From: Macrostomum lignano
Taxonomy: Eukaryota
Length of the DNA stretch: 64,000 nt
Direction: 5' to 3'
Assembly: GCA_002269645.1 (NCBI GenBank)
Contig: NIVC01001504.1
Location: forward strand, 62,001-126,000
Part shown: positions 1,738-30,919 of the stretch, in pieces
Layout of the letters: every line of letters begins with the position of its first letter
Position numbering within the stretch: the stretch's first letter is position 1
Program-made: the position numbers and the translations under genes
Notes under the pieces: model-generated
Told to the model about the DNA's origin: nothing
The model's input: only the letters and a program-made list of their open reading frames with translations
The model's database searches: none

Positions 1738-3397
<1,660 letters not shown>

Positions 3398-8299: not shown

Positions 8300-10193
8300 G
8301 ACCATCATGTCATTGCCGAAGACTCCAGGAGGGCTCCAGGTGCAAGGAAGCCGCTTGGCGCTGCCGTGGGCGCACAGATGTTCACATAGTTGCCCCTTTG
8401 ACCCTCACCGCTTCAGCCAGCCAGCAGCCGTCGGGCCAATCACCGAGAAGCTAAGCGGCAAGAGCTGCTCCGGTGTTGGCGACGCCGTCGGTCAGAAAAG
8501 CCGGCGGCAGCCGCGTCAGCGGCAAGCAGAGCCGCAGGTCGCGGCCGGTAATGAGGGCGCGGTGCTGTTAGGCCGGCAGCAGGGAGGCGAGAAGGGCGTG
8601 GTCGCCCCGGTTCGCATGCGCAAAGTCGTTGAGTACGGTGTGAGCTCAGGACCGAGCAACTGGAAGGAGCGGCAGGCAGAGTTCCCGGTCCTGCGGCTGC
8701 CCCACGGCGGACTACAAGACTTTGAATAGTGACTCAAACGCCGGGTTCGCTGCCGACCAGGTGTGGAGGCTCATCAGGAGAAGCTACTCGGCGGGCACCG
8801 GCAAGATGAGAATCAGCACCGCCGCGGTCCATTCTGTTGCTGCTGTCCCCTGCTGTTGCGGGCCGCCTGCAACGAAGCCGCTGGCTGTCTTTGAACCATC
8901 AAAGCCACCGACATCTCCGCCGAAGTTGCCGGCAAATCGAGTGGCCGCGCTGTCGACTGACCCTTGCTTCTCGGCCTTCTCGGACAGCGGACTCCGGCAG
9001 CCGATGACGAGTTTGCCAAAGCCGATCGTCTCGATTGAAGCGGACGCGATCGTCAGCCCGCTCCCCTGCCGGCCGTCCGACTGAAGCGAGCGGAGGCGCC
9101 GGGCGCGGAGCTCAGCCACCGGCTGCAGCAGCAGGCGCAGGCAGCTACAGCAGGCGTAGCACAAGTGCCTGCCAGCAGCGGCAACTGCGCCAAGGCCCTG
9201 GCTGATCTGCAGCTTGTCGATGGCGGCGTGGAATGGCGCCGTTGGGCCGAGCCGGCTGGCGACGGCGGGAGATTCGGCGGCGAATCGGCGGGGTGCGATG
9301 ACTCGCGCAGATGCCGTTGGGCGGAGGAGCAGCCGGTGGGAGGCGCAACGTTTCTTCACCGACCCCGGCAGGTCAGTGAGCTGGTGCAGGCCGCAGCTGC
9401 AGAGCTTCACGGCTTCACGGCGCAGTTGCAGCGCAGCGGCTTCAGCAACCTGCGGAAGCTGGGGAGCCGCGGGCAGCTGCAGCGCCAAGCAGCAGTGCAG
9501 CGGCGGCTGCGGCGGACGCTGGTGACAAAGCAGCGACTGCACCGGAGGCCGGTGCTGCGTGGCAAACCAGCTGGCCAGGTTAGCGTCCAGGATGGCGCAG
9601 CCGATGACCGGGCGCTGGCCCTGGCGGCAGCGCGCTTGGCCCTGCCTCGGCAGCCGAGAATGTTCAGCAGCGCAGCTTGGCCACTCAGCTTTTGCCAGGC
9701 AGAGGGCCAGTAAGCAGTCTCGAGGCGCACGGTTCTCGGGTCGGGTCTCGTGGAACGCCGGCAACTCCTCGCTTTCCGGGCCGCCGGCCTGGCTGAGCCG
9801 CAGGCTGGCAGTCGAGGTGGCCGCGGTGCCAGCCCGGTCCGTCAGCGGCAGCTGCAAGCACAAGCTGAAATGCCGCCGGCTCTGCGGCCTCTGCCTGGCC
9901 ACCAGGAGCTCGACGCAGATTTCGATGCCGCGATTGTCTTCGGATTGGCTCAGCCCGCGTCGGCGATGCCGGTGTCTTGGTAACGGCGGGTGCCTCTGGG
10001 CGTCGCCCCGCTGCAAGAGGCAGAGGCTGAGCAGCTGGCGCTCGCGCAGCCGCCGGGAGATGCTCCGTGATCTCCGAGTCACGGACGAGGCAGCTTTCGT
10101 GTGGCTCTGGTGCCGCCTTACTCGGCTGCCTCGGTGCGGGACCTCGCCGCGCCAGCCCGGCATGAGCAGCTGCTCCATGCTGCCCTGCCACAT
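8300..10193 (-). pseudogene. GC-rich coding-like region of unknown family with several in-frame stops
   Basis: 469-aa ORF 10193-8784 rich in CTG/CAG/GCC codons. The same frame continues with protein-like sequence through further TAG/TGA/TAA stops to about 8300. No homolog recognised. Confidence 0.35.
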
Positions 10194-10447
10194 GCTGGCT
10201 TGCAGCGATCAAGTGAGCTTCGATTCGAATCTTGAGCTGAGCAGAATTAAGTCTTCAATTGTAAAGTGCCGTACTAGCTAGTGCACACCAAGATGGTTCT
10301 GAGCCTAAATTTAGCCCCTGGTCTATGGCAGGAACAAATTAAGGAGGCAGTTGGTTTTCTAAAGTGTCTAAAAAATTAGAAGTTGGATGCATATCAACAG
10401 CAACAAACTACAGCAACCCTGGGCAAGCCAATTAAGTTGGGTTGCTG

Positions 10448-11340
10448 TCAAAATGCGCGCGCAAGCACAGATTTGCGCAGAGCAGCGAGTCCGCGGGGGT
10501 CAGAGATTTCAGCGTCTCTTAAAAGCAGGTCGACAAAACGCAGACTTCTCGCCTGACCAAGCCGCCGCGGCCCTTGAAGGATAAGCAGCAGCACGTCTTG
10601 AAGCGGCTCAGGGCAGTACTGCTCTGTCCGGATGACGTGGCCGGCCAGCTGTAGGCGCCGGATGTGCAGCAGCTGGCTGGGTCGGGAGAGCTGGGCCCGT
10701 CGGTATAACTCGTCATTGCTGGTGTTGGTGCTGGCGGTCGGCGAATAGTGGACACCGAAGGCGGCTCTCAGGAGTCCAGCGTGAGCGGCGTCGAGTTGCC
10801 GCTCCTGCGGGCCGGTCAGTGTCCACGTTTCAGCGTTGTAAAGGAGGACGGTTTCAATGACGGCCTGGAACAGCAGCCCTCTCAGCCGATCCGGCAGCGC
10901 GGGGCTCTGCAGGACAGTCCGCACGGTGCGGAATGCACCCCACGCAAGCACCCTGCGCCGTGCCATGTCCTCCGTGATGCTTGGCACCAGACCGCCGAAG
11001 TAGACGAACTCTTTGCAGCGGGGCAGCAACGCCACCTGCCCGTTCGTGCAGCGGCAGTAGATCTCAGTCCGATCGCAGCGGCCGCGCCGCCGTCAGCTGG
11101 TCTAGCAGGCGTTGAGCTCCTTCAGCTGTGCTAGGCAGCAGCGCTAGATCGTCTGCGTACGCTAGGACGGAGTCGCTTCTCGGGGTGCCGCCTGCTTGTT
11201 CTGCGGCAGAGCAAGAATCCTTTGGAGTCGTCAGGGAGGCCAGTGCGCAGTACCCAGTGCAGGACCAGGAAGAACAGAAAAGGAGAGCCAAGATGTCCCC
11301 TTGGAGAACGCCGGAAGACGTGTCGAAGAAGACACACAAA
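10448..11340 (-). mobile_element. 5'-truncated, frameshifted non-LTR retrotransposon (LINE, RTE-like) reverse transcriptase fragment
   Basis: Motifs SSGVLQGD, LAYADDLALL, FVYFGG and FQAVIETVLLYNAETWTLT are spread over different frames. Confidence 0.85.
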
Positions 11341-17000: not shown

Positions 17001-19611
17001 AGGATCTGGGAGGCTGGCTGCTCAGCCTGAGGATCTGGGAGGCTGGCTGCTCAGCCTGAGGATCTGGGAGGCTGCTCAGCCTGAGGATCTGGGAGACTGG
17101 CTGCTCAGCCTGAGGATCTGGGAGACTGGCTGCTCAGCCTGAGGATCTGGGAGACTGGCTGCTCAGCCTGAGGATCTGGGAGACTGGCTGCTCAGCCTGA
17201 GGATCTGGGAGGCTGGCTGCTCAGCCTGAGGATCTGGGAGGCTGGCTGCTCAGCCTGAGGATCTGGGAGGCTGCTCAGCCTGAGGATCTGGGAGACTGGC
17301 TGCTCAGCCTGAGGATCTGGGAGACTGGCTGCTCAGCCTGAGGATCTGGGAGACTGGCTTTTTCGCTTGAGGATCTGGGAGACTGGCTTTTTCGCTTGAG
17401 GATCTGGAAGGCTGTCTGCTCAGCCTGAGGATCTGGGAGGCTGGCTGCTCAGTCTGAGGATCTGGGAGGCTGGCTGCTCAGCCTGAGGATCTGGGAGGCT
17501 GGCTGCTCAGCCTGAGGATCTGGGAGGCTGCTCAGCCTGAGGATCTGGGAGACTGGCTGCTCAGCCTGAGGATCTGGGAGACTGGCTGCTCAGCCTGAGG
17601 ATCTGGGAGACTGGCTGCTCAGCCTGAGGATCTGGGAGACTGGCTGCTCAGCCTGAGGATCTGGGAGGCTGGCTGCTCAGCCTGAGGATCTGGGAGGCTG
17701 GCTGCTCAGCCTGAGGATCTGGGAGGCTGCTCAGCCTGAGGATCTGGGAGACTGGCTGCTCAGCCTGAGGATCTGGGAGACTGGCTGCTCAGCCTGAGGA
17801 TCTGGGAGACTGGCTTTTTCGCTTGAGGATCTGGGAGACTGGCTTTTTCGCTTGAGGATCTGGAAGGCTGTCTGCTCAGCCTGAGGATCTGGGAGGCTGG
17901 CTGCTCAGCTTAAGGATCTGGGAAAGTGACACAAAAACAGCTAGGCAGCATCAGTTGAGCTCACATCACGGCCTCCTGCTCCAGACTGTTGGTTCTGCTG
18001 TGGGTACGCACCGAGCAGGCGGAGAAATTCGATGCGTTCCGTCTGTGGCCGAGGCCGCCGCCGCCCAGGGTGCCGAGGGCCGCCGAGGAGGTGGAGGCGG
18101 ACGTGAGGACGGGCGCCGCGCTGTCTGGCGTGGAGGCCGCAACGGCCGAGGCGACCGAGCCGTCTGCAGCCGTGGACGTGGCGGAGGGCAGCAGGGGCTG
18201 CAGGCTGAGGCGGAGGGTGCTGTTGTCCAGCCGCTGGCCCTGGCTGTAGGGGCTGAGGATGCACTTGTGCTCGGTGTCGCCCACCCAGGCCAGGTCCGTC
18301 AGGTCGATCACAGCGTAGCCGATCTTCGTGTACGAGCGGCCGCCTCGCTCCTCGCGCCGCACGGAGACGCGCAGGTGGACGGCCGGCGCGGCGGCGGGGG
18401 CGACAGGCGGTTGCAGGCCCAGCCGGCAGACAAACTCCATGGGGGGCTGGTTGGACCAGGACACCTTGTTGTCCCGGATCTCCCTGCGGGTGGGCCGGAG
18501 GTGACCAGCGGAATGGGACTGCGTGTGACCAGGGAGATGGGACTGCGTGTGACTAGGGAGATGGGACTGCGTGTGACTAGGGAGATGGGACTGCGTGTGA
18601 CCAGGGAGATGGGACTGTTAGTGACTAGGGAGATGGGACTGTGAGTGACCAGGGAGATGGGACTGCGTGTGACCAGGGAGATGGGACTGTGAGTGACCAG
18701 GGAGATGGGACTGCGTGTGACCAGGGAGATGGGACTGCGTGTGACCAGGGAGATGGGACTGCGTGTGACCAGGGAGATGGGACTGCGTGTGACTAGGGAG
18801 ATGGGACTGCGTGTTGCAATGGGGTGGGAGTCACTGTGTGGTACCAGATATATTATCCAGGAGGATACAAACCAGACTAACTGGACCAAAAAGAGCTACA
18901 AAAAAGGAAAATCTCAGCCTATAAAGAGTTGCAGACATTTAAGGCAAAAATATGAAATGCACTCTTGACTCGAGCTGGCTGCCCGAACGGGCGCTCACAT
19001 TGCGTGGGCGCCATCGGTAGAGCTTCAGACTGACTTTCTGTTTATTTCAATTCAGTCTGCTGCATCCCAGCAGCCCATTGTGAGCGGGGCGCAGCTAAAT
19101 TTAGCCAAGGGCTCTCAAGAGTTGAACGGGTGCGCAGCTCACCTGTGCTCGGAGTGCTGGCAGAACCGGCCGCCCCGAAGCAGGCGCACCTTAGCAAATA
19201 AAATGCCATGGCTCAGCGTGACGCCTTCCAGCTCAAGGAGGCGCAGGCGGACTCGCACCTGGTGGTATTAAAAATAAATCAATTTGTGAGTTTCAGAAAC
19301 TATAAGCGTGAATCCCAAGAGCTAAATGTGTGAATCTTAAGAGTTCTCTTTAAAACTGTGTGCGTTTTAGGCTAAACAGCGCACAGGCACTGACAGTCGA
19401 AACAGCGCACAGACACTGATATTTGAATGGCCATCAGAAACAAACAGAAAACAATCTGCACCTTTGCTGGACGGCAGCGGCTGCTGGGAGGCGGCGCGCC
19501 AGTGGCAGCAATGGAGTTGGCACCAACGGAGGCCACGTCTGGCTCAAGCTGCTGCTGTGGGCTGAGCTGCTGCTGCTGCTGCTGCTCAGGGGGCCGCACG
19601 CAGTTGAACAT
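14087..19611 (-). CDS. FAM102A: FAM102/EEIG1-family NT-C2 domain protein, about 329 aa; exons 19611-19462, 19258-19143, 18483-17965, 15067-14992, 14215-14087
   Basis: Phase-consistent GT-AG junctions. ILFAKVRLLRGG, VHLRVSVRREERGGRSYTKIGYAVIDL, RLDNSTLRL and C-terminal RIANTRTDNFQIVKEV match family motifs. The first exon is the least certain. Confidence 0.85.
14341..14922. repeat. 21-bp minisatellite (GTCCATTAGCTATCCTCCCCT) in FAM102 intron 4
   Basis: Visible tandem periodicity. Confidence 0.95.
15345..15937. repeat. 18-20-bp minisatellite (TCTGCATTCACACCCACC) in FAM102 intron 3
   Basis: Visible tandem periodicity with variants. Confidence 0.92.
16490..17922. repeat. 29-bp minisatellite (ATCTGGGAGGCTGGCTGCTCAGCCTGAGG), nearly 50 copies, FAM102 intron 3
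   Basis: Visible tandem periodicity. Confidence 0.96.
18500..18815. repeat. 24-bp minisatellite (GTGACCAGGGAGATGGGACTGCGT) in FAM102 intron 2
   Basis: Visible tandem periodicity ending about 20 bp from the acceptor. Confidence 0.95.
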
Positions 19612-25159: not shown

Positions 25160-28100
25160 TCACGGCTGCTGGCTGTACTTGGCGTGCATCCGCTGGGCCA
25201 CCTCGTACACGTAGGAGATGTCAGGCCTGGCGTCCGGGCTGGGCTGGATCATGGCACTGACCAGGTCGCGCAGCTGCGGGCGGCGGCGATGGGGAATTAG
25301 AGGCCAGTAAGCTACTGTCAGTAGTACATGTATACGTAACAGACTGGTGGCGTAAAACAGGAATGCATAAACTCTTGCAGATATTTGAGAAAGCCGTGAC
25401 TTTTTACGCAATTTTTGACAAACTTTTTAACCTCAAGAACAGAATAAAAAATCCAGCTCATGGCTTCAGCTCTCCTTCTCACTCTCCTCACTCTCCAGAG
25501 AGTAGGAAGGAGAGGGAATAGAAGATAAGAGATGAGAGAAGAGAGGAGAGGCGAGAGATGGGATGAGAGAAAAGATAGAAGAGTAAAGAGGGGAGAGAGA
25601 TCAGAGAGGAGAGAGGGCAGAGGAGAGAGGAGAGCGGAGAGAAAAAGAGGGGAGAGTGGAGAGGGGAGAGGGAAGAGAGGGGAGAGAAAGGAGAGAGAGG
25701 AGAGAGTAGAGGGGCGAGGGGAGAGGGAAGAGAGAGGAGAGAGTAGAGGGGAGAGAAGAGAAAGGGGGGAGAAGGGAGAAGAGAGGAGAGGGGAGAGGAG
25801 AGAGAGGGGAGAGAAGGGAGAGGAGAGGAGAGAGGAGAGAGGAGAGAGGAGAGAGGAGAGAGGAGAGAGGGGAGAGGGGAGAGGGGCGAGAGAGGAGAGG
25901 GGAGAGGAGAGAGGGGGGAGAGAAGGGAGAGGAGAGGAGAGAGGAGAGAGGAGAGAGGAGAGAGGAGAGAGGAGAGAGGCGAGATGGGAGAGGAAAAAGG
26001 GGAGAAGAGAGAGGGGAGAGGGGAGGAGTGCTTAAAAGAGATATGAACCATGAGCGGACGGGCTCGCTATTGTGAAGTTTCAAAGGACCCGATGGCCGGA
26101 TAGAGAGGCTTTGCGGGTCGGAGTTTGCCGACCCCAGGGTTAGCCCAATTAAACAGGTATGTTGATAATAAAATTAGATTTCAAAATGAGGCGATTTTTA
26201 AAGTACTACTGAAAATCAGAAATATAAAAACAGCTTATTAAACTTGATAACAAGTTTACCTCGCTCGAATAGATGTCCGCAGGCAGGGGCGGATAGTCGC
26301 ACTGCTCAATCTTCTTGCACAGCGAGTACAGGTTCATCTTGTCTCCATAGAAGGGGCTCTGCAGGGCGGCCATCTCGTACAGCAGGCAGCCCAGGGACCA
26401 CAGGTCCGACTTGAAGTTGTAGCCGTTCTCGTGGATGCGCTCGGGGCTCATGTAGTAGGGCGTGCCGACTGGGGGGGGGCGGCGGGCTGCTATGAGTGAT
26501 CTAACAGTCCAGACTCCTGACCCAACAGTCCCGACTCCTGACCCAACAGTCCCAACTCCTGAAACAAGAGTCCAGACTCCTGAAATAACAGTCCCGACTC
26601 CTGACATAACAGTCCCGACTCCTGACCCAACAGTCCAGACTCCTGAAACAAGAGTCCAGACTTTTGACATAACAGTCCCGACTCCTGACCCAACAGTCCC
26701 GACTCCTGACCCAACAGTCCCGACTCCTGACCCAACAGTCCCGACTCCTGACCCAACAGTCCCGACTCCTGACCCAACAGTCCCAACTCCTGACCCAACA
26801 GTCCCGACTCCTGACCCAACAGAGCAGCAACCACTCACCAAGCGAGTGGGCATTGGTGGTCTTGGAGCTGAAGAAGCGACCAAGGCCTAGGTCTCCCAGC
26901 TTAACCTGGCCGCTGGCCGTGATGAACACGTTAGCCGGCTTGATGTCTGCGGGTATCAAAGCCGATGCATACTACTCATTAGTGATATGGACGCCAATTT
27001 CTAAATGCTTTTAGAGATCTTTGGTGCAATCAATGCAGAACCGGATCCTGAATTTCGCTCCGGTTCAAATCAATAACCAGCTTTAACAAAGGCGAAGCGA
27101 TGGAAATGAGTTCACAGTCTTTGACTCTTGGCTCTTTCAGGGGCCACTATTGAGAGAAAAGTCATGCTGAGACTGCCTGCTCCCCACACCCTCAAGTGAG
27201 AAGGCAATGCCCTCAAGCCATGGCAATAGCAGCCCACCTCTGTGCATAATCCGCTTGGAGTGCATGTGGTCCAGGCCGCTGCAGATCTGCACAAAGTACT
27301 TCCAGATGGTCTTCTCCGGGATGAGGCGCTGCTGCTTCTTGAAGTGCTGCAAGGCGGGTTGCAACGGGGCGGCGAGGGGATATGAGAGCGGGGCGGCCAT
27401 TGTGCTGTGCGTGAGGATAGGGAAGAGGAAAAGTGGCACTAAGAATTCATTAAGGCACGGAGTGCTAAACCTACACATCTGGAGACTGAGCAGCTTGAAG
27501 AAGTAGTGAGAGCGGAGGGGGTTTCCACTCCAGATATTTCTATCTAGAAGTCTGTGAGATAGTGAAATCAGAGTTTCCACTCCTGATGCTTCTATCCAGG
27601 AGTCCGTGAGGCAGTAGTGAAAGCGGAGGGGATTTCTACTCCAGATGTTTATACCCAGGAGTCCGTGAGGCAGTAGTGAAAGCGGAGGGGATTTCTACTC
27701 CAGATGTTTATACCCAGGAGTCCGTGAGGCAGTAGTGAAAGTGGAGGGGTTTTCACTCCAGATGTTTATACCCAGGAGTCCGTGAGGCAGTAGTGAAAGT
27801 GAAGGGGTTTTCACTCCAGATGTTTATACCCAGGAGTCCGTGAGGCAGTAGTGAAAGTGAAGGGGTTTTCACTCCAGATGTTTATACCCAGGAGTCCGTG
27901 AGGCAGTAGTGAAAGCGGAGGGGATTTCTACTCCAGATGTTTATACCCAGGAGTCCGTGAGGCAGTAGTGAAAGTGGAGGGGTTTTCACTCCAGATGTTT
28001 ATACCCAGGAGTCCGTGAGGCAGTAGTGAAAGTGAAGGGGTTTTCACTCCAGATGTATATATCCAGGAGTCCGTGAGGCAGTAGTGAAAGTGAAGGGGTT

Positions 28101-30870
28101 TTCACTCCAGATTTTTATACCCAGGAGTCCGTGAGGCAGTAGTGAAAGTGAAGGGGTTTTCACTCCAGATGTTTATACCCAAGAGTCCGTGAGGCAGTAG
28201 TGAAAGTGAAGGGGTTTCCACTCCAGAAGTTTATACCCAAGAGTCCGTGAGGCATCAGCAGCTCACCTTGATCATGCGGGACAGGTCCCCGGCGTCGGCC
28301 AGCTCCAGCACAATGTTCAGCTCATTGTTCTCAATAAATGAGGCCAGGTAGCGAATGACGTTCGGGTGGTCCAGTTGCTGCGGTGTGCCGGGCGAGCATA
28401 AATTATTCATGAGCAAAACCGGTGGGTCAATAATTCATCTGAGGACTTTTCTTCACACAGCGCCTGCATAACCCCCTATCCCATGCCACCTGAGCCTGAG
28501 GCTTGGGGGATTAAAAGGCCGGGGCTTCGGCCCTCCATTTGTACCCACCTTGAGCAAGTCGATCTCCTTGATGCAGTCCTGCCGCGCCTTGGCGTCCATC
28601 ATCTCGAAGATCTGCGGGTTGTGGCGGGCGGGCGAGCTCTGCGTTTTGCCTGTTTGATCTCTGCTGGGCCGTGCTCAAATCTCTCTCTTGAGTTGAGAAA
28701 GTTGAGCACTTTGTAAAGTCAATCAAGAATTAGGCAAAAAATCAGCCGAGTTGTGAGTTGCAATCAGGCAAAAGTGCAAATATGTTAGTTTGCCAGGCGC
28801 TTGGCAAATTAAGACTATTTGACGGCCTGCATGGGATTCTGAAAGCTGCCTTTAGGCCGATGTGGGAAGTGAGGGTCAAGCCGGAGCTAGAGATCAGATC
28901 CCAATATGGGAAGTGAGGGTCAAGCCGGAGCTAGAGATCAGATCCCAATATGGGAAGTGAGGGTCAAGCCGGAGCTAGAGATCAGATCCCAATATGGGAA
29001 GTGAGGGTCAAGCCGGAGCTAGAGATCAGATCCCAATATGGGAAATGAGGGTCAAGCCGGAGCTAGAGATCAGATCCCAATATGGGAAGTGAGGGTCAAG
29101 CCGGAGCTAGAGATCAGATCCCAATATGGGAAGTGAGGGTCAAGCTGGAGCTAGAGATCAGATCCCAATATGGGAAGTGAGGGTCAAGCCGGAGCTAGAG
29201 ATCAGATCCCAATATGGGAAGTGAGGGTCAAGCCGGAGCTAGAGATCAGATCCCAATATGGGAAGTGAGGGTCAAGCCGGAGCTAGAGATCAGATCCCAA
29301 TATGGGAAGTGAGGGTCAAGCCGGAGCTAGAGATCAGATCCCAATATGGGAAGTGAGGGTCAAGCCGGAGCTAGAGATCAGATCCCAATATGGGAAGTGA
29401 GGGTCAAGCCGGAGCTAGAGATCAGATCCCAATATGGGAAGTGAGGGTCAAGCCGGAGCTAGAGATCAGATCCCAATATGGGAAGTGAGGGTCAAGCCGG
29501 AGCTAGAGATCAGATCCCAATATGGGAAGTGAGGGTCAAGCCGGAGCTAGAGATCAGATCCCAATATGGGAAGTGAGGGTCAAGCCGGAGCTAGAGATCA
29601 GATCCCAATATGGGAAGTGAGGGTCAAGCCGGAGCTAGAGATCAGATCCCAATATGGGAAGTGAGGGTCAAGCCGGAGCTAAGAGATCAGATCCCAATAT
29701 GGGAAGTGAGGGTCAAGCCGGAGCTAGAGATCAGATCCCAATATGGGAAGTGAGGGTCAAGCTGGAGCTAGAGATCAGATCCCAATATGGGAAGTGAGGG
29801 TCAAGCCGGAGCTAGAGATCAGATCCCAATATGGGAAGTGAGGGTCAAGCCGGAGCTAAGAGATCAGATCCCAATATGGGAAGTGAGGGTCAAGCCGGAG
29901 CTAGAGATCAGATCCCAATATGGGAAGTGAGGGTCAAGCCAGAGCTAGAGATCAGATCCCAATATGGGAAGTGAGGGTCAAGCCGGAGCTAGAGATCAGA
30001 TCCCAATATGGGAAGTGAGGGTCAAGCCGGAGCTAAGAGATCAGATCCCAATATGGGAAGTGAGGGTCAAGCTGGAGAGAACAATCCAGGAATCCCAGTG
30101 CAGAATCCAGCGCAAGGGGCAGCCGAGGCCCTACCTGGACCTTCTTAAGTGCCACCACGCATTCGTCCTCGCGGCAGATGGCGCGCCAAACCTCGCTGAA
30201 CTGGCCCTTGCCAATTTTTTTATCAATTTTGAACTTGGCCAGGGAACCGTACTTATTTTCTGGGTCGTGATTCGGCACCACAAAGTCAGCGTCCATGGCT
30301 GCTGCAAGACGCGCATTGTTTGAATTTAAATTAGCAGTTTTGATTGAGTGGCGCTCAGGTTACTAATATTAAATCAGCTGATCAGCAGATCGATAATTAG
30401 CCTTGCCAAAATTTGTTATTGCAGTTATTGATCGATTTGTTAGATCGAATTTGATTAGAAAGCTGTATGGCTAAGAAATGATTAGAGAGCAGCGCCGAGT
30501 TAGCAAGTTCGAAGCGGCACACTGCATAGCAACAGGCACAATTGCCTTAGCAACGAATCGAGGCTACATTAGCTACCTGAACTTTCTTGAGCGCCACAAC
30601 CCTGCCATCAACAATGCAGTGAGCTTTGTACACAACTGAGAACTGGCCCTTCCCTATGCGCTTCTCAATCTGCAGGTTGGCCAGCGCGGAGTAGGGGTTC
30701 TCTTGGGGCAGCTGCACTGGATAGCTGAAGTCTGCATCATAGGCGGCAGCTGCCGCCGGCACATGAGGAGCAGCAAGTGCAGTATAGTACAGAGTGCCCT
30801 GCTGTGGCTGCTGCTGCTGTTGAAGAAAAGCCTCGCCAATGTTGTAGCGATAGTCCTGCTGACCATCCAT
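25160..30870 (-). CDS. NEK7: NEK6/7 serine/threonine kinase; first exon A 30870-30577 or B 30296-30135, then 28611-28549, 28377-28267, 27346-27238, 26946-26839, 26468-26260, 25273-25160 (about 335 or 291 aa)
   Basis: [14 protein letters not shown]|[21 protein letters not shown]|[36 protein letters not shown] and DLWSLGC are all present. All junctions are GT-AG and in phase. NEK6 versus NEK7 orthology is not resolvable. Confidence 0.95.
25500..26030. repeat. purine-rich (GGAGA)n-type simple repeat in the last NEK intron
   Basis: Nearly pure G/A tract on the + strand. Confidence 0.93.
26503..26820. repeat. 21-bp minisatellite (CTCCTGACCCAACAGTCCCGA) in a NEK intron
   Basis: Visible tandem periodicity filling most of intron 26469-26838. 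Confidence 0.95.
27570..28252. repeat. 59-bp minisatellite in a NEK intron, about 11 copies
   Basis: GAGTCCGTGAGG recurs at 27600, 27659, 27718 and onward. Confidence 0.95.
28863..30075. repeat. 44-bp minisatellite (ATATGGGAAGTGAGGGTCAAGCCGGAGCTAGAGATCAGATCCCA), about 27 copies, first NEK intron
   Basis: Highly homogeneous tandem periodicity. Confidence 0.96.
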
Positions 30871-30919
30871 TGTATGCTCTGTGTGCAGCCTACAGACTGT
30901 CAGTTGTCTAGCAAATCAG

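Follow-up and report, generated by a model that had tools for sequence, protein, structure and literature searches.

Two homologous first coding exons upstream of one NEK6/7-type kinase body in Macrostomum lignano

The NEK6/7 locus and its gene model

The window analysed here, a stretch of 64,000 nucleotides (nt) that is byte-identical to part of the Macrostomum lignano contig NIVC01001504.1 (positions 62,001 to 126,000), carries a single NEK6/7-type protein kinase gene on its minus strand, running from position 30903 to 25160; in the coordinates of this locus (L003), the gene start at 10001 corresponds to window position 30903. A six-exon kinase body (28611 to 25160) lies downstream of two homologous first coding exons, referred to below as exon A (upstream) and exon B (downstream), and every junction of the gene model is of the GT-AG type with matching phases. 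Probing the window with tblastn returned one kinase body and two matches for the N-terminal exon. The shared exon 2 begins at 28611, immediately after an AG, which is where the earlier note on this DNA, made from its letters alone, had placed it. Joined to the body, exon A is predicted to give a product of 335 amino acids (aa), isoform A, and exon B one of 291 aa, isoform B. We consider it highly likely that this is one NEK6/7 gene with two tandem homologous alternative first coding exons, giving isoforms A and B. A transcript starting with either A or B would be spliced from its own phase 0 donor to the common exon 2 (28611), and the two isoforms would be the same from helix αC to the C terminus, differing in the N-terminal extension (NTE) and in strands β1-β3.

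On its sequence, the kinase belongs to the NEK6/7 subfamily of the NIMA-related kinases. Both isoforms match PDB chains of NEK7 over NEK7 residues 24-297 (E ~1e-157), and database matches carry the names 'NEK6-subfamily protein kinase' or Nek7. The predicted protein consists of a short N-terminal extension and a kinase domain and lacks a C-terminal regulatory domain, the stop codon coming six residues past the end of the NEK7 alignment, and it has all the signature residues of the subfamily: Lys63, HRDIKPAN, DLG, Tyr97 and, in the NTE, Tyr28 and Leu31. Residue numbers here and below are those of human NEK7, taken from a structure alignment in which NEK7 residue n corresponds to isoform A residue n+32 and isoform B residue n-12.

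Exon A starts with a Gln/Ala-rich, low-complexity tail (residues 1-55) that is predicted to be disordered, followed by the NTE, strands β1-β3, the Gly-rich loop and the catalytic lysine (NEK7 K63, isoform A K95), and ends at the phase 0 donor CAG/GTAGCT. The content of exon B is a short tail, β1-β3, the Gly-rich loop and the catalytic lysine (isoform B K51), with the phase 0 donor CAG/GTAGGG. The earlier note had described the two exons as each having their own ATG, sharing a DADF motif and ending IGKGQFS...VVALKKVQ before a phase 0 GT, with 24 of the last 39 residues identical; translation bears this out, placing DADF at residues 44-47 of A and 2-5 of B, and reproduces the count exactly. Over the whole homologous stretch, 32/53 residues and 90/159 nucleotides are identical, and the similarity is far above that expected by chance (reciprocal tblastn, E = 3e-14 to 6e-15). 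The same codon is used at just 13 of the 32 identical residues, and the comparison of substitution rates that the note had proposed gave a non-synonymous divergence (dN) of 0.43 between A and B, the synonymous divergence (dS) being undefined by the Nei-Gojobori method because of saturation. Such saturated synonymous sites, together with the low number of identical residues sharing a codon, indicate that the A/B duplication is old.

The two exons are homologous, lie on the same strand 280 nt apart and belong to one gene, as expected of tandem-duplicated exons. However, tandem exons of the kind selected by the spliceosome are internal and equal in size, whereas A and B measure 294 nt and 162 nt, and each is a first coding exon with an ATG. 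In the gene model each also joins the common exon 2, and hence the pair is better classed as alternative first exons that arose by tandem duplication. The coordinates of the gene, together with those of the equivalent exons in three other animals, are collected in Table 1.

Table 1. Features of the M. lignano NEK6/7 gene in the window and equivalent first coding exons in other animals (positions in the last three rows are those of the named locus)
Feature	Position	Strand	Remarks
5' leader, just upstream of exon A ATG	30871..30903	-	Genome-contiguous in NCBI models P0002/P0124, whose partial proteins begin there
Exon A, upstream alternative first coding exon, 98 aa, 294 nt	30577..30870	-	ATG start; used by P0002/P0124
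Intron between A and B, 280 nt	30297..30576	-	AT-rich; neutral rate between copies
TTGCAG acceptor-type motif	30302..30307	-	Ends 5 nt before exon B ATG; present in all three locus copies
Exon B, downstream alternative first coding exon, 54 aa, 162 nt	30135..30296	-	Own ATG; translation, orthologues
Intron between B and exon 2, 1523 nt	28612..30134	-	Mostly 44-nt tandem repeat
Shared exon 2, start of helix αC	28549..28611	-	Acceptor cag/ATCTTC takes either first exon, phase 0
Shared exon 3 (...SRMIK)	28267..28377	-	Autoinhibitory Tyr = NEK7 Tyr97; tblastn, gene model, NEK7 alignment
Shared exon 4 (HFKKQQ...IMHR)	27238..27346	-	Gene model
Shared exon 5 (...DLGLGRFF...AHSL)	26839..26946	-	Catalytic loop, DLG motif, activation loop; gene model
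Shared exon 6 (...ADIYSSE)	26260..26468	-	Gene model
Shared last coding exon (exon 7, ...KYSQQP)	25160..25273	-	TGA stop; gene model
Lingula anatina (brachiopod), L006	A-type 10001-10180; B-type 10808-10978; exon 2 start 12863		
Lamellibrachia satsuma (annelid), L008	A-type 9180-9497; B-type 10001-10153; exon 2 start 13111		A-type unannotated, B-type annotated
Tubulanus polymorphus (nemertean), L009	Upstream exon 10001-10186; B-type 10317-10484; exon 2 start 12055		Upstream exon annotated, B-type unannotated

Selection on the two exons and their occurrence in other phyla

Three near-identical copies of the locus are present in the assembly (the window, which is L003, together with L002 and L005), as is expected of M. 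lignano, a hidden polyploid. All three retain both exons with identical protein sequences. Among the copies, eight substitutions were found in exon A and three in exon B, with no indels in either exon, and all 11 are synonymous; given that about 20-23% of random changes would be synonymous, the chance of this outcome is P = 7e-6 for A and P = 0.008 for B. The introns differ by 3-7% between copies and have accumulated many indels, the intron between B and exon 2 measuring 1523, 2360 and 855 nt in the three copies. These comparisons depend on the inclusion of L005, as the divergence between the window (L003) and L002 alone is too low to be informative.

A deeper comparison is provided by an older NEK6/7 paralogue in the same genome (L001; NIVC01002209.1, 9986-12850; P0009, P0121 and P0122), which has a B-type first exon only, here termed B'; a search of the 10 kb upstream of B' for a decayed A-type exon, at very permissive settings, returned nothing but noise. 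The genes that follow the two loci downstream, that of the window lying at 17964-19255 on the minus strand, are homologous to each other, which indicates that the paralogues stem from a segmental or whole-genome duplication. Between their kinase bodies dN is 0.051 and dS 1.34, and between exons B and B' dN is 0.13 with dS saturated; the last coding exon, at 67% identity, is the best means of telling the locus from its paralogue. Neutral decay of the second exon, raised in the earlier note as a finding that would speak against its reading, is excluded: at a body dS of 1.34 the frame, ATG and donor of B are intact, whereas after so long a time without use one or other of them would have been lost. 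By these sequence comparisons, exons A and B are both under purifying selection, in the long term as well as recently. The introns of the paralogue are much shorter than those of the window locus.

The NEK7 loci of other animals, with flanks of about 10 kb, were scanned with the exon peptides. As to whether related species have both exons, which the earlier note had proposed to check, the pair was found in the same order, upstream of one exon 2, in the brachiopod Lingula, the annelid Lamellibrachia and the nemertean Tubulanus. All eight exons of the four species have their own ATG, end in ...ALKKVQ and have a CAG/gt donor. The upstream exon has the longer tail and the sequence QFS[VT]VY, and the downstream exon encodes 51-57 aa with a tail of the form [DE]-[FL]-x-V-P...DP-x-N-x-Y, which is partial in Lamellibrachia. 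The Lingula B isoform predicted from the genome is exactly that of RefSeq XP_013412664.1/XP_013412665.1, 'Nek7 isoform X2', and isoform X1 (XP_013412663.1) uses the A-type exon; the orthologous exon pair is already modelled as alternative first exons in this species. The two systems agree in their layout of A-type exon, B-type exon and shared exon 2, in the separate start codons, in the phase 0 ...ALKKVQ/gt junctions, and in the tail motif and core of B. They differ in the spacing of A and B (627 nt in Lingula, against 280 nt), in the length of exon A (60 aa in Lingula, which has a short tail, against 98 aa) and in annotation, which has both isoforms in Lingula but A only in M. lignano.

A single, A-like first exon is found in Priapulus and Saccoglossus. 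Cephalopod entries that cluster with Lingula X2 were considered and set aside, as they have a single type of N-lobe and their isoforms differ at the C terminus. The Lamellibrachia exon at 9180-9497 and the Tubulanus exon at 10317-10484 are intact NEK7 first coding exons absent from the respective annotations, and the isoforms predicted from them are not found in a collection of 15 billion proteins. Alternative N-lobe exons of NEK6/7 were not described in any paper found by a literature search, though RefSeq models them in Lingula.

When NEK7 positions 25-66 are compared, Macrostomum B and B' have 28-32 of 42 residues in common with the B exons of Lingula and Lamellibrachia and with the B-like exon of Mytilus; with Macrostomum A the figure is 24-26 of 42, and with Lingula A 21 of 42. 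Between phyla, B exons match one another at 28-31 of 42 residues, more than the 21-26 of 42 at which they match the A exon of their own species. In a neighbour-joining tree of the exons, whose deep nodes are weak, as is to be expected of 43 residues, one side contains the five B exons together with Mytilus, Octopus and Watersipora, and the other the four A exons with non-spiralian animals and human NEK6 and NEK7; Lottia, B-like in its residues, is placed on the A side. Judged from these sequences, a single A/B duplication probably predates the split of flatworm, brachiopod, annelid and nemertean; the explanation that we favour for its distribution is that A was lost afterwards from some lineages and from the M. 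lignano paralogue. The A-type would represent the generic metazoan form, with QFSVVY, a long tail and Asn33 kept, and the B-type a derived form with a short tail and Asn33 usually replaced.

Several points weigh against a single origin. The orthology of the A exons among the four species is only putative, what they share being mostly ancestral states, and deep support in the tree is weak; the tails of Macrostomum A and B resemble each other (DADF...P...EN.Y, 8/15), which could reflect partial gene conversion or a more complex history; and Mytilus, a mollusc, and Watersipora, a bryozoan, have only a B-like first exon within 10 kb, the pair not being universal in Spiralia. The similar tails, the poorly supported deep nodes and the failure of the four A exons to form a clade would also suit independent, lineage-specific tandem duplications in the four phyla, as would the recurrence of tandem exon duplication in the NEK7 family, seen in a C-lobe exon of Acanthaster and in a decayed exon 3 of Mytilus (see below). 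Such parallel duplication is nevertheless improbable: in each of the four phyla the generic type lies upstream and the derived type downstream, all B exons have the derived changes E37D and V47E and a short tail with a common motif, with Y49W in Macrostomum and Lingula, and groupings of A with B from the same species receive a bootstrap support of 0-8%.

Transcripts and the probable alternative use of exons A and B

Exon A is joined to exon 2 in M. lignano transcripts. The NCBI annotation has proteins with this junction for all three copies of the locus (P0002, P0124), and PAA93825.1 (P0002), which derives from a copy outside the window, matches isoform A with 100% identity. The partial coding sequences (CDSs) of these models run into the 5' leader, at least 33 nt upstream of the ATG of exon A, as would fit an annotation derived from transcripts. 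Neither isoform A nor isoform B is present as such, as an exact protein, in the 15-billion-protein collection. The best-looking match to a protein search with exon B plus exon 2 (P0229/L004) was rejected, being a GC-rich gene of an unrelated eukaryote with other intron positions, and the search otherwise returned only short fragments. Among other models, P0126 (A0A1I8I340) omits exon 3, and P0009 and P0128 retain intron sequence. The gene identifiers Mlig033112, Mlig032735, Mlig024690 and Mlig032178 were not found in the searchable literature or its supplements.

Each of the two exons has its own start codon, and joining A to either of the acceptor-type AGs that precede the ATG of B, 5 and 2 nt upstream of it, would shift the frame, so that their use is expected to be exclusive. 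The earlier note had stated that this splice would be out of frame; indeed, the natural donor of A and these AGs are offset by 2, and translation would end prematurely within exon 2, at about codon 157-158, whereas either exon alone enters exon 2 in phase 0. Only a weak alternative donor restores the frame when A and B are chained. The wider proposal, that two mutually exclusive first coding exons serve one kinase body, is supported by the selection on both exons, by the frameshift, by the occurrence of the pair in three other phyla and by the Lingula isoforms; from these we infer the use of exon B at the M. lignano locus.

Against use of B stands the finding that neither the 15-billion-protein collection nor the NCBI annotation of the three copies contains a protein or transcript model in which B is spliced to exon 2 of this particular locus; moreover, the B-only paralogue could supply a B-type kinase, and a recent loss of B use here is conceivable. 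Exon B might even be an unused relic, this gene having come to rely on A only, and the paralogue on B only, after the gene duplication. The A-to-exon-2 models of all three copies and the lack of any trace of A in the 10 kb upstream of the B-type exon of the paralogue fit this scenario, and the loss of one exon per paralogue is documented in the FYN family (PMC9741552). However, the paralogues are old, and still B keeps its ATG, frame, donor and all catalytic residues; its changes among the copies are synonymous in three of three cases and free of indels, whereas the flanking introns have them; the acceptor-type motif upstream of B is kept even where the intron has diverged; and three other phyla retain both exons in one gene. 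A relic is, on this evidence, quite unlikely, rather more so than parallel duplication.

If exon B is used as a first exon, its transcripts would require a start of their own. A 35-nt spliced leader (SL) is found on 21-30% of M. lignano genes, depending on the estimate, and its acceptor sites are enriched for the motif [T/C]TNCAG (PMC8629364). Exon B is preceded by tcTTGCAG/CAGCC ATG, which matches this motif, itself short and unspecific; the match is conserved in all three copies, including L005, in which the intron just upstream has diverged, and neither exon A nor the B' exon of the paralogue has such an acceptor motif. Isoform B might therefore start by SL trans-splicing at 30301, in which case the joint would read ...TTGCATG followed by CAGCCATGGAC, or from a promoter within the A-B intron, whose 280 nt would have to house any internal promoter of exon B. 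The spliced-leader sequence itself was not found within the window. To our knowledge, no SL trans-splicing has been reported from Lingula.

The good acceptor-type motif 5 nt before the ATG of B would also allow exon B to act mainly as a poison exon, A being spliced in cis to TTGCAG with a resulting frameshift, nonsense-mediated decay and less kinase, and the product of A, B and exon 2 in succession does stop within exon 2. As a main role this is very unlikely: a poison exon does not require protein conservation, whereas the amino acids and start codon of B are kept relative to the paralogue and across phyla, and in Lingula B is annotated as a coding first exon. The effect could be an added regulatory layer at most.

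Least credible of all is the reading of A and B in series within one mRNA, giving a kinase with a duplicated β1-β3 unit, as modelled in UniProt A0A1I8GQY4 (P0001) and A0A1I8ICQ9 (P0123), where A is followed by VANVAS[LI]PA, B and the body: although a GT-AG intron giving this junction exists (donor ATTC/GTTGCT at +22, acceptor TTGCAG/) and reproduces the junction peptide of these models (VANVASIPAMDADF) exactly, the +22 donor is weak compared with the GT[G/A]AG consensus of the species (PMC8629364), the natural donor of A gives a frameshift into B, the transcript-based NCBI models omit B, Lingula RefSeq uses the two exons alternatively, and two Gly-rich loops and two catalytic lysines before one αC would be incompatible with the kinase fold. 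The series models are probably misannotations in which a gene finder held the frame open.

Differences between the isoforms and comparable kinases

The mitotic kinases NEK6 and NEK7 are not redundant, although their catalytic domains are nearly the same; NEK7 is in addition a licensing partner of the NLRP3 inflammasome, and the difference between the two is usually ascribed to their N-termini. In the M. lignano gene, the alternative exon spans the NTE (20-33), β1-β3, the Gly-rich loop (41-48) and Lys63, with Gln66 as its last residue. A and B agree at I40, G41, G43, V48, A61 and K63, and also at the docking residues of the NTE, Y28 and L31. Consistent changes from A to B across phyla are E37 to D, V47 to E at the outward-facing tip of the Gly-rich loop, and changes in the β2-β3 loop. 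Asn33 is kept in all four A exons and replaced in four of the five B exons, by Lys in that of Macrostomum; it was discarded as an absolute discriminator of the two types, since the Tubulanus B exon and the B-like exons of molluscs and bryozoans retain it.

In human NEK7 the NTE wraps round Asn33, and the N33D, Y28A/L31A and Δ30 mutants lose stability and activity (PMC2807034). NEK6 has Asp33, and RKT instead of GVP on β3, with ATP-lining residues identical to those of NEK7 (PMC2807034); the activating back-to-back dimer of NEK7 involves NTE residues 24-29 and residues 55-58 of the β2-β3 loop (PMC4632185). As the differences between A and B map to the NTE, the β2-β3 loop and the tip of the Gly-rich loop, the exon swap would alter the tail and the regulatory surface at the back of the N-lobe, but not the contacts with ATP. 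The suggestion of the earlier note that part of the ATP pocket is swapped holds in so far as the exon encodes the Gly-rich loop and Lys63, but the residues lining the pocket are unchanged. With the ATP-contacting residues the same, the sequences suggest that nucleotide binding is probably alike in both isoforms; by analogy with the human proteins, they probably differ in stability, activation or choice of partner. That a functional difference is argued only through NEK6 and NEK7, and that Asn33 is an imperfect discriminator (Tubulanus B keeps it), tell against this part of the interpretation. AlphaFold2 models, made with 32-row alignments, gave a predicted local distance difference test (pLDDT) score of 75.9 for isoform B and 53.5 for isoform A, a gap that is a modelling artefact, as both isoforms have one and the same kinase body; models of this quality do not allow the docking of the NTE to be judged, and they were used only for the presence of three β-strands in each exon and the disorder of residues 1-55 of A.

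The closest known case among kinases is FYN, whose exons 7A and 7B (FynB and FynT) are likewise tandem-duplicated and mutually exclusive, and give isoforms that differ in regulation (PMC9741552). The FYN paralogues retained one exon each (PMC9741552), the same pattern as is seen in the B-only paralogue of M. lignano. However, FYN is a tyrosine kinase, and its exons are internal, equal in size and chosen by splicing, whereas the NEK exons are unequal first coding exons; since each has its own start codon, the choice between them is probably made at transcript initiation or by trans-splicing.

Vertebrate NEK6 and NEK7 resemble isoforms A and B in having near-identical catalytic domains with the same ATP-lining residues, and in a divergence that is concentrated in the NTE and at the back of the N-lobe (PMC2807034). 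NEK7 has Asn33 with a docked NTE and NEK6 has Asp33 (PMC2807034); likewise, Asn33 is present in A-type exons and replaced in most of the B-type. The parallel that the earlier note had drawn with the vertebrate pair is apt as an analogy, but does not extend to orthology: NEK6 and NEK7 of humans are both placed on the A side in the tree of the exons, and hence the B-type is not orthologous to NEK6. Vertebrates have obtained two N-termini through duplication of the whole gene, whereas here one gene has two copies of an exon. We put forward, tentatively and at somewhat less than even odds, that a single A/B duplication more than 500 million years old has persisted in several phyla of Spiralia as a counterpart, at the level of exons, of NEK6/NEK7, forming a conserved switch of the NTE and of the back-face surface for dimerisation and autoinhibition that leaves the catalytic site untouched, with the downstream exon of the flatworm selected by SL trans-splicing rather than by a promoter.

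Several invertebrate phyla would reach a comparable split of the N terminus through two exons in one gene, kept since before their divergence. As an independent line of evidence from evolution, the exon pair would point to the NTE and the N-lobe back face as the variable part of the kinase that matters for its function. As M. lignano permits RNA interference and transgenesis, isoform-specific knock-down could separate the functions without compensation by a paralogue. For annotation, the series models in UniProt and WormBase are probably wrong, and the annotations of Lamellibrachia and Tubulanus each lack one isoform.

Further duplicated exons were seen in other members of the family. Nek7-like isoform X2 of Acanthaster planci (P0004) contains two consecutive homologous C-lobe segments, the second being MAALDSPFYSEGLDLWTLCEKIDKCEYPPLPS...; these segments may represent a further mutually exclusive pair that the model reads in series. 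In Mytilus californianus the real exon 3 has beside it a decayed copy (L007, 23997-24074) that contains a stop codon.

Upstream of exon A, a comparison of 1.5 kb between L002 and the other copy compared showed 246 differing alignment columns, gaps included, which indicates copy-specific indels or a transposon insertion. A reverse-transcriptase gene (RVT_1) lies about 7 kb upstream of exon A in L002 (714-2657, minus strand), and none was called in L003 or L005. Four introns of the NEK6/7 gene hold long tandem arrays (28863-30077, 27502-28254, 26503-26822 and 25528-26028), the first with 27.5 copies of a 44-nt unit and the others composed of 13 units of 58 nt, 15 units of 21 nt and a GA-rich tract; the copy number of the arrays varies strongly among the three copies of the locus. 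The base composition of the window, in 2-kb windows, is strongly mosaic, with up to 55-65% G+C in coding regions and 33-40% elsewhere, and the G+C fraction at third codon positions of the kinase body is 0.89. On the plus strand at about 3089-3244, the translation resembles part of what we take to be an alpha-tubulin gene.

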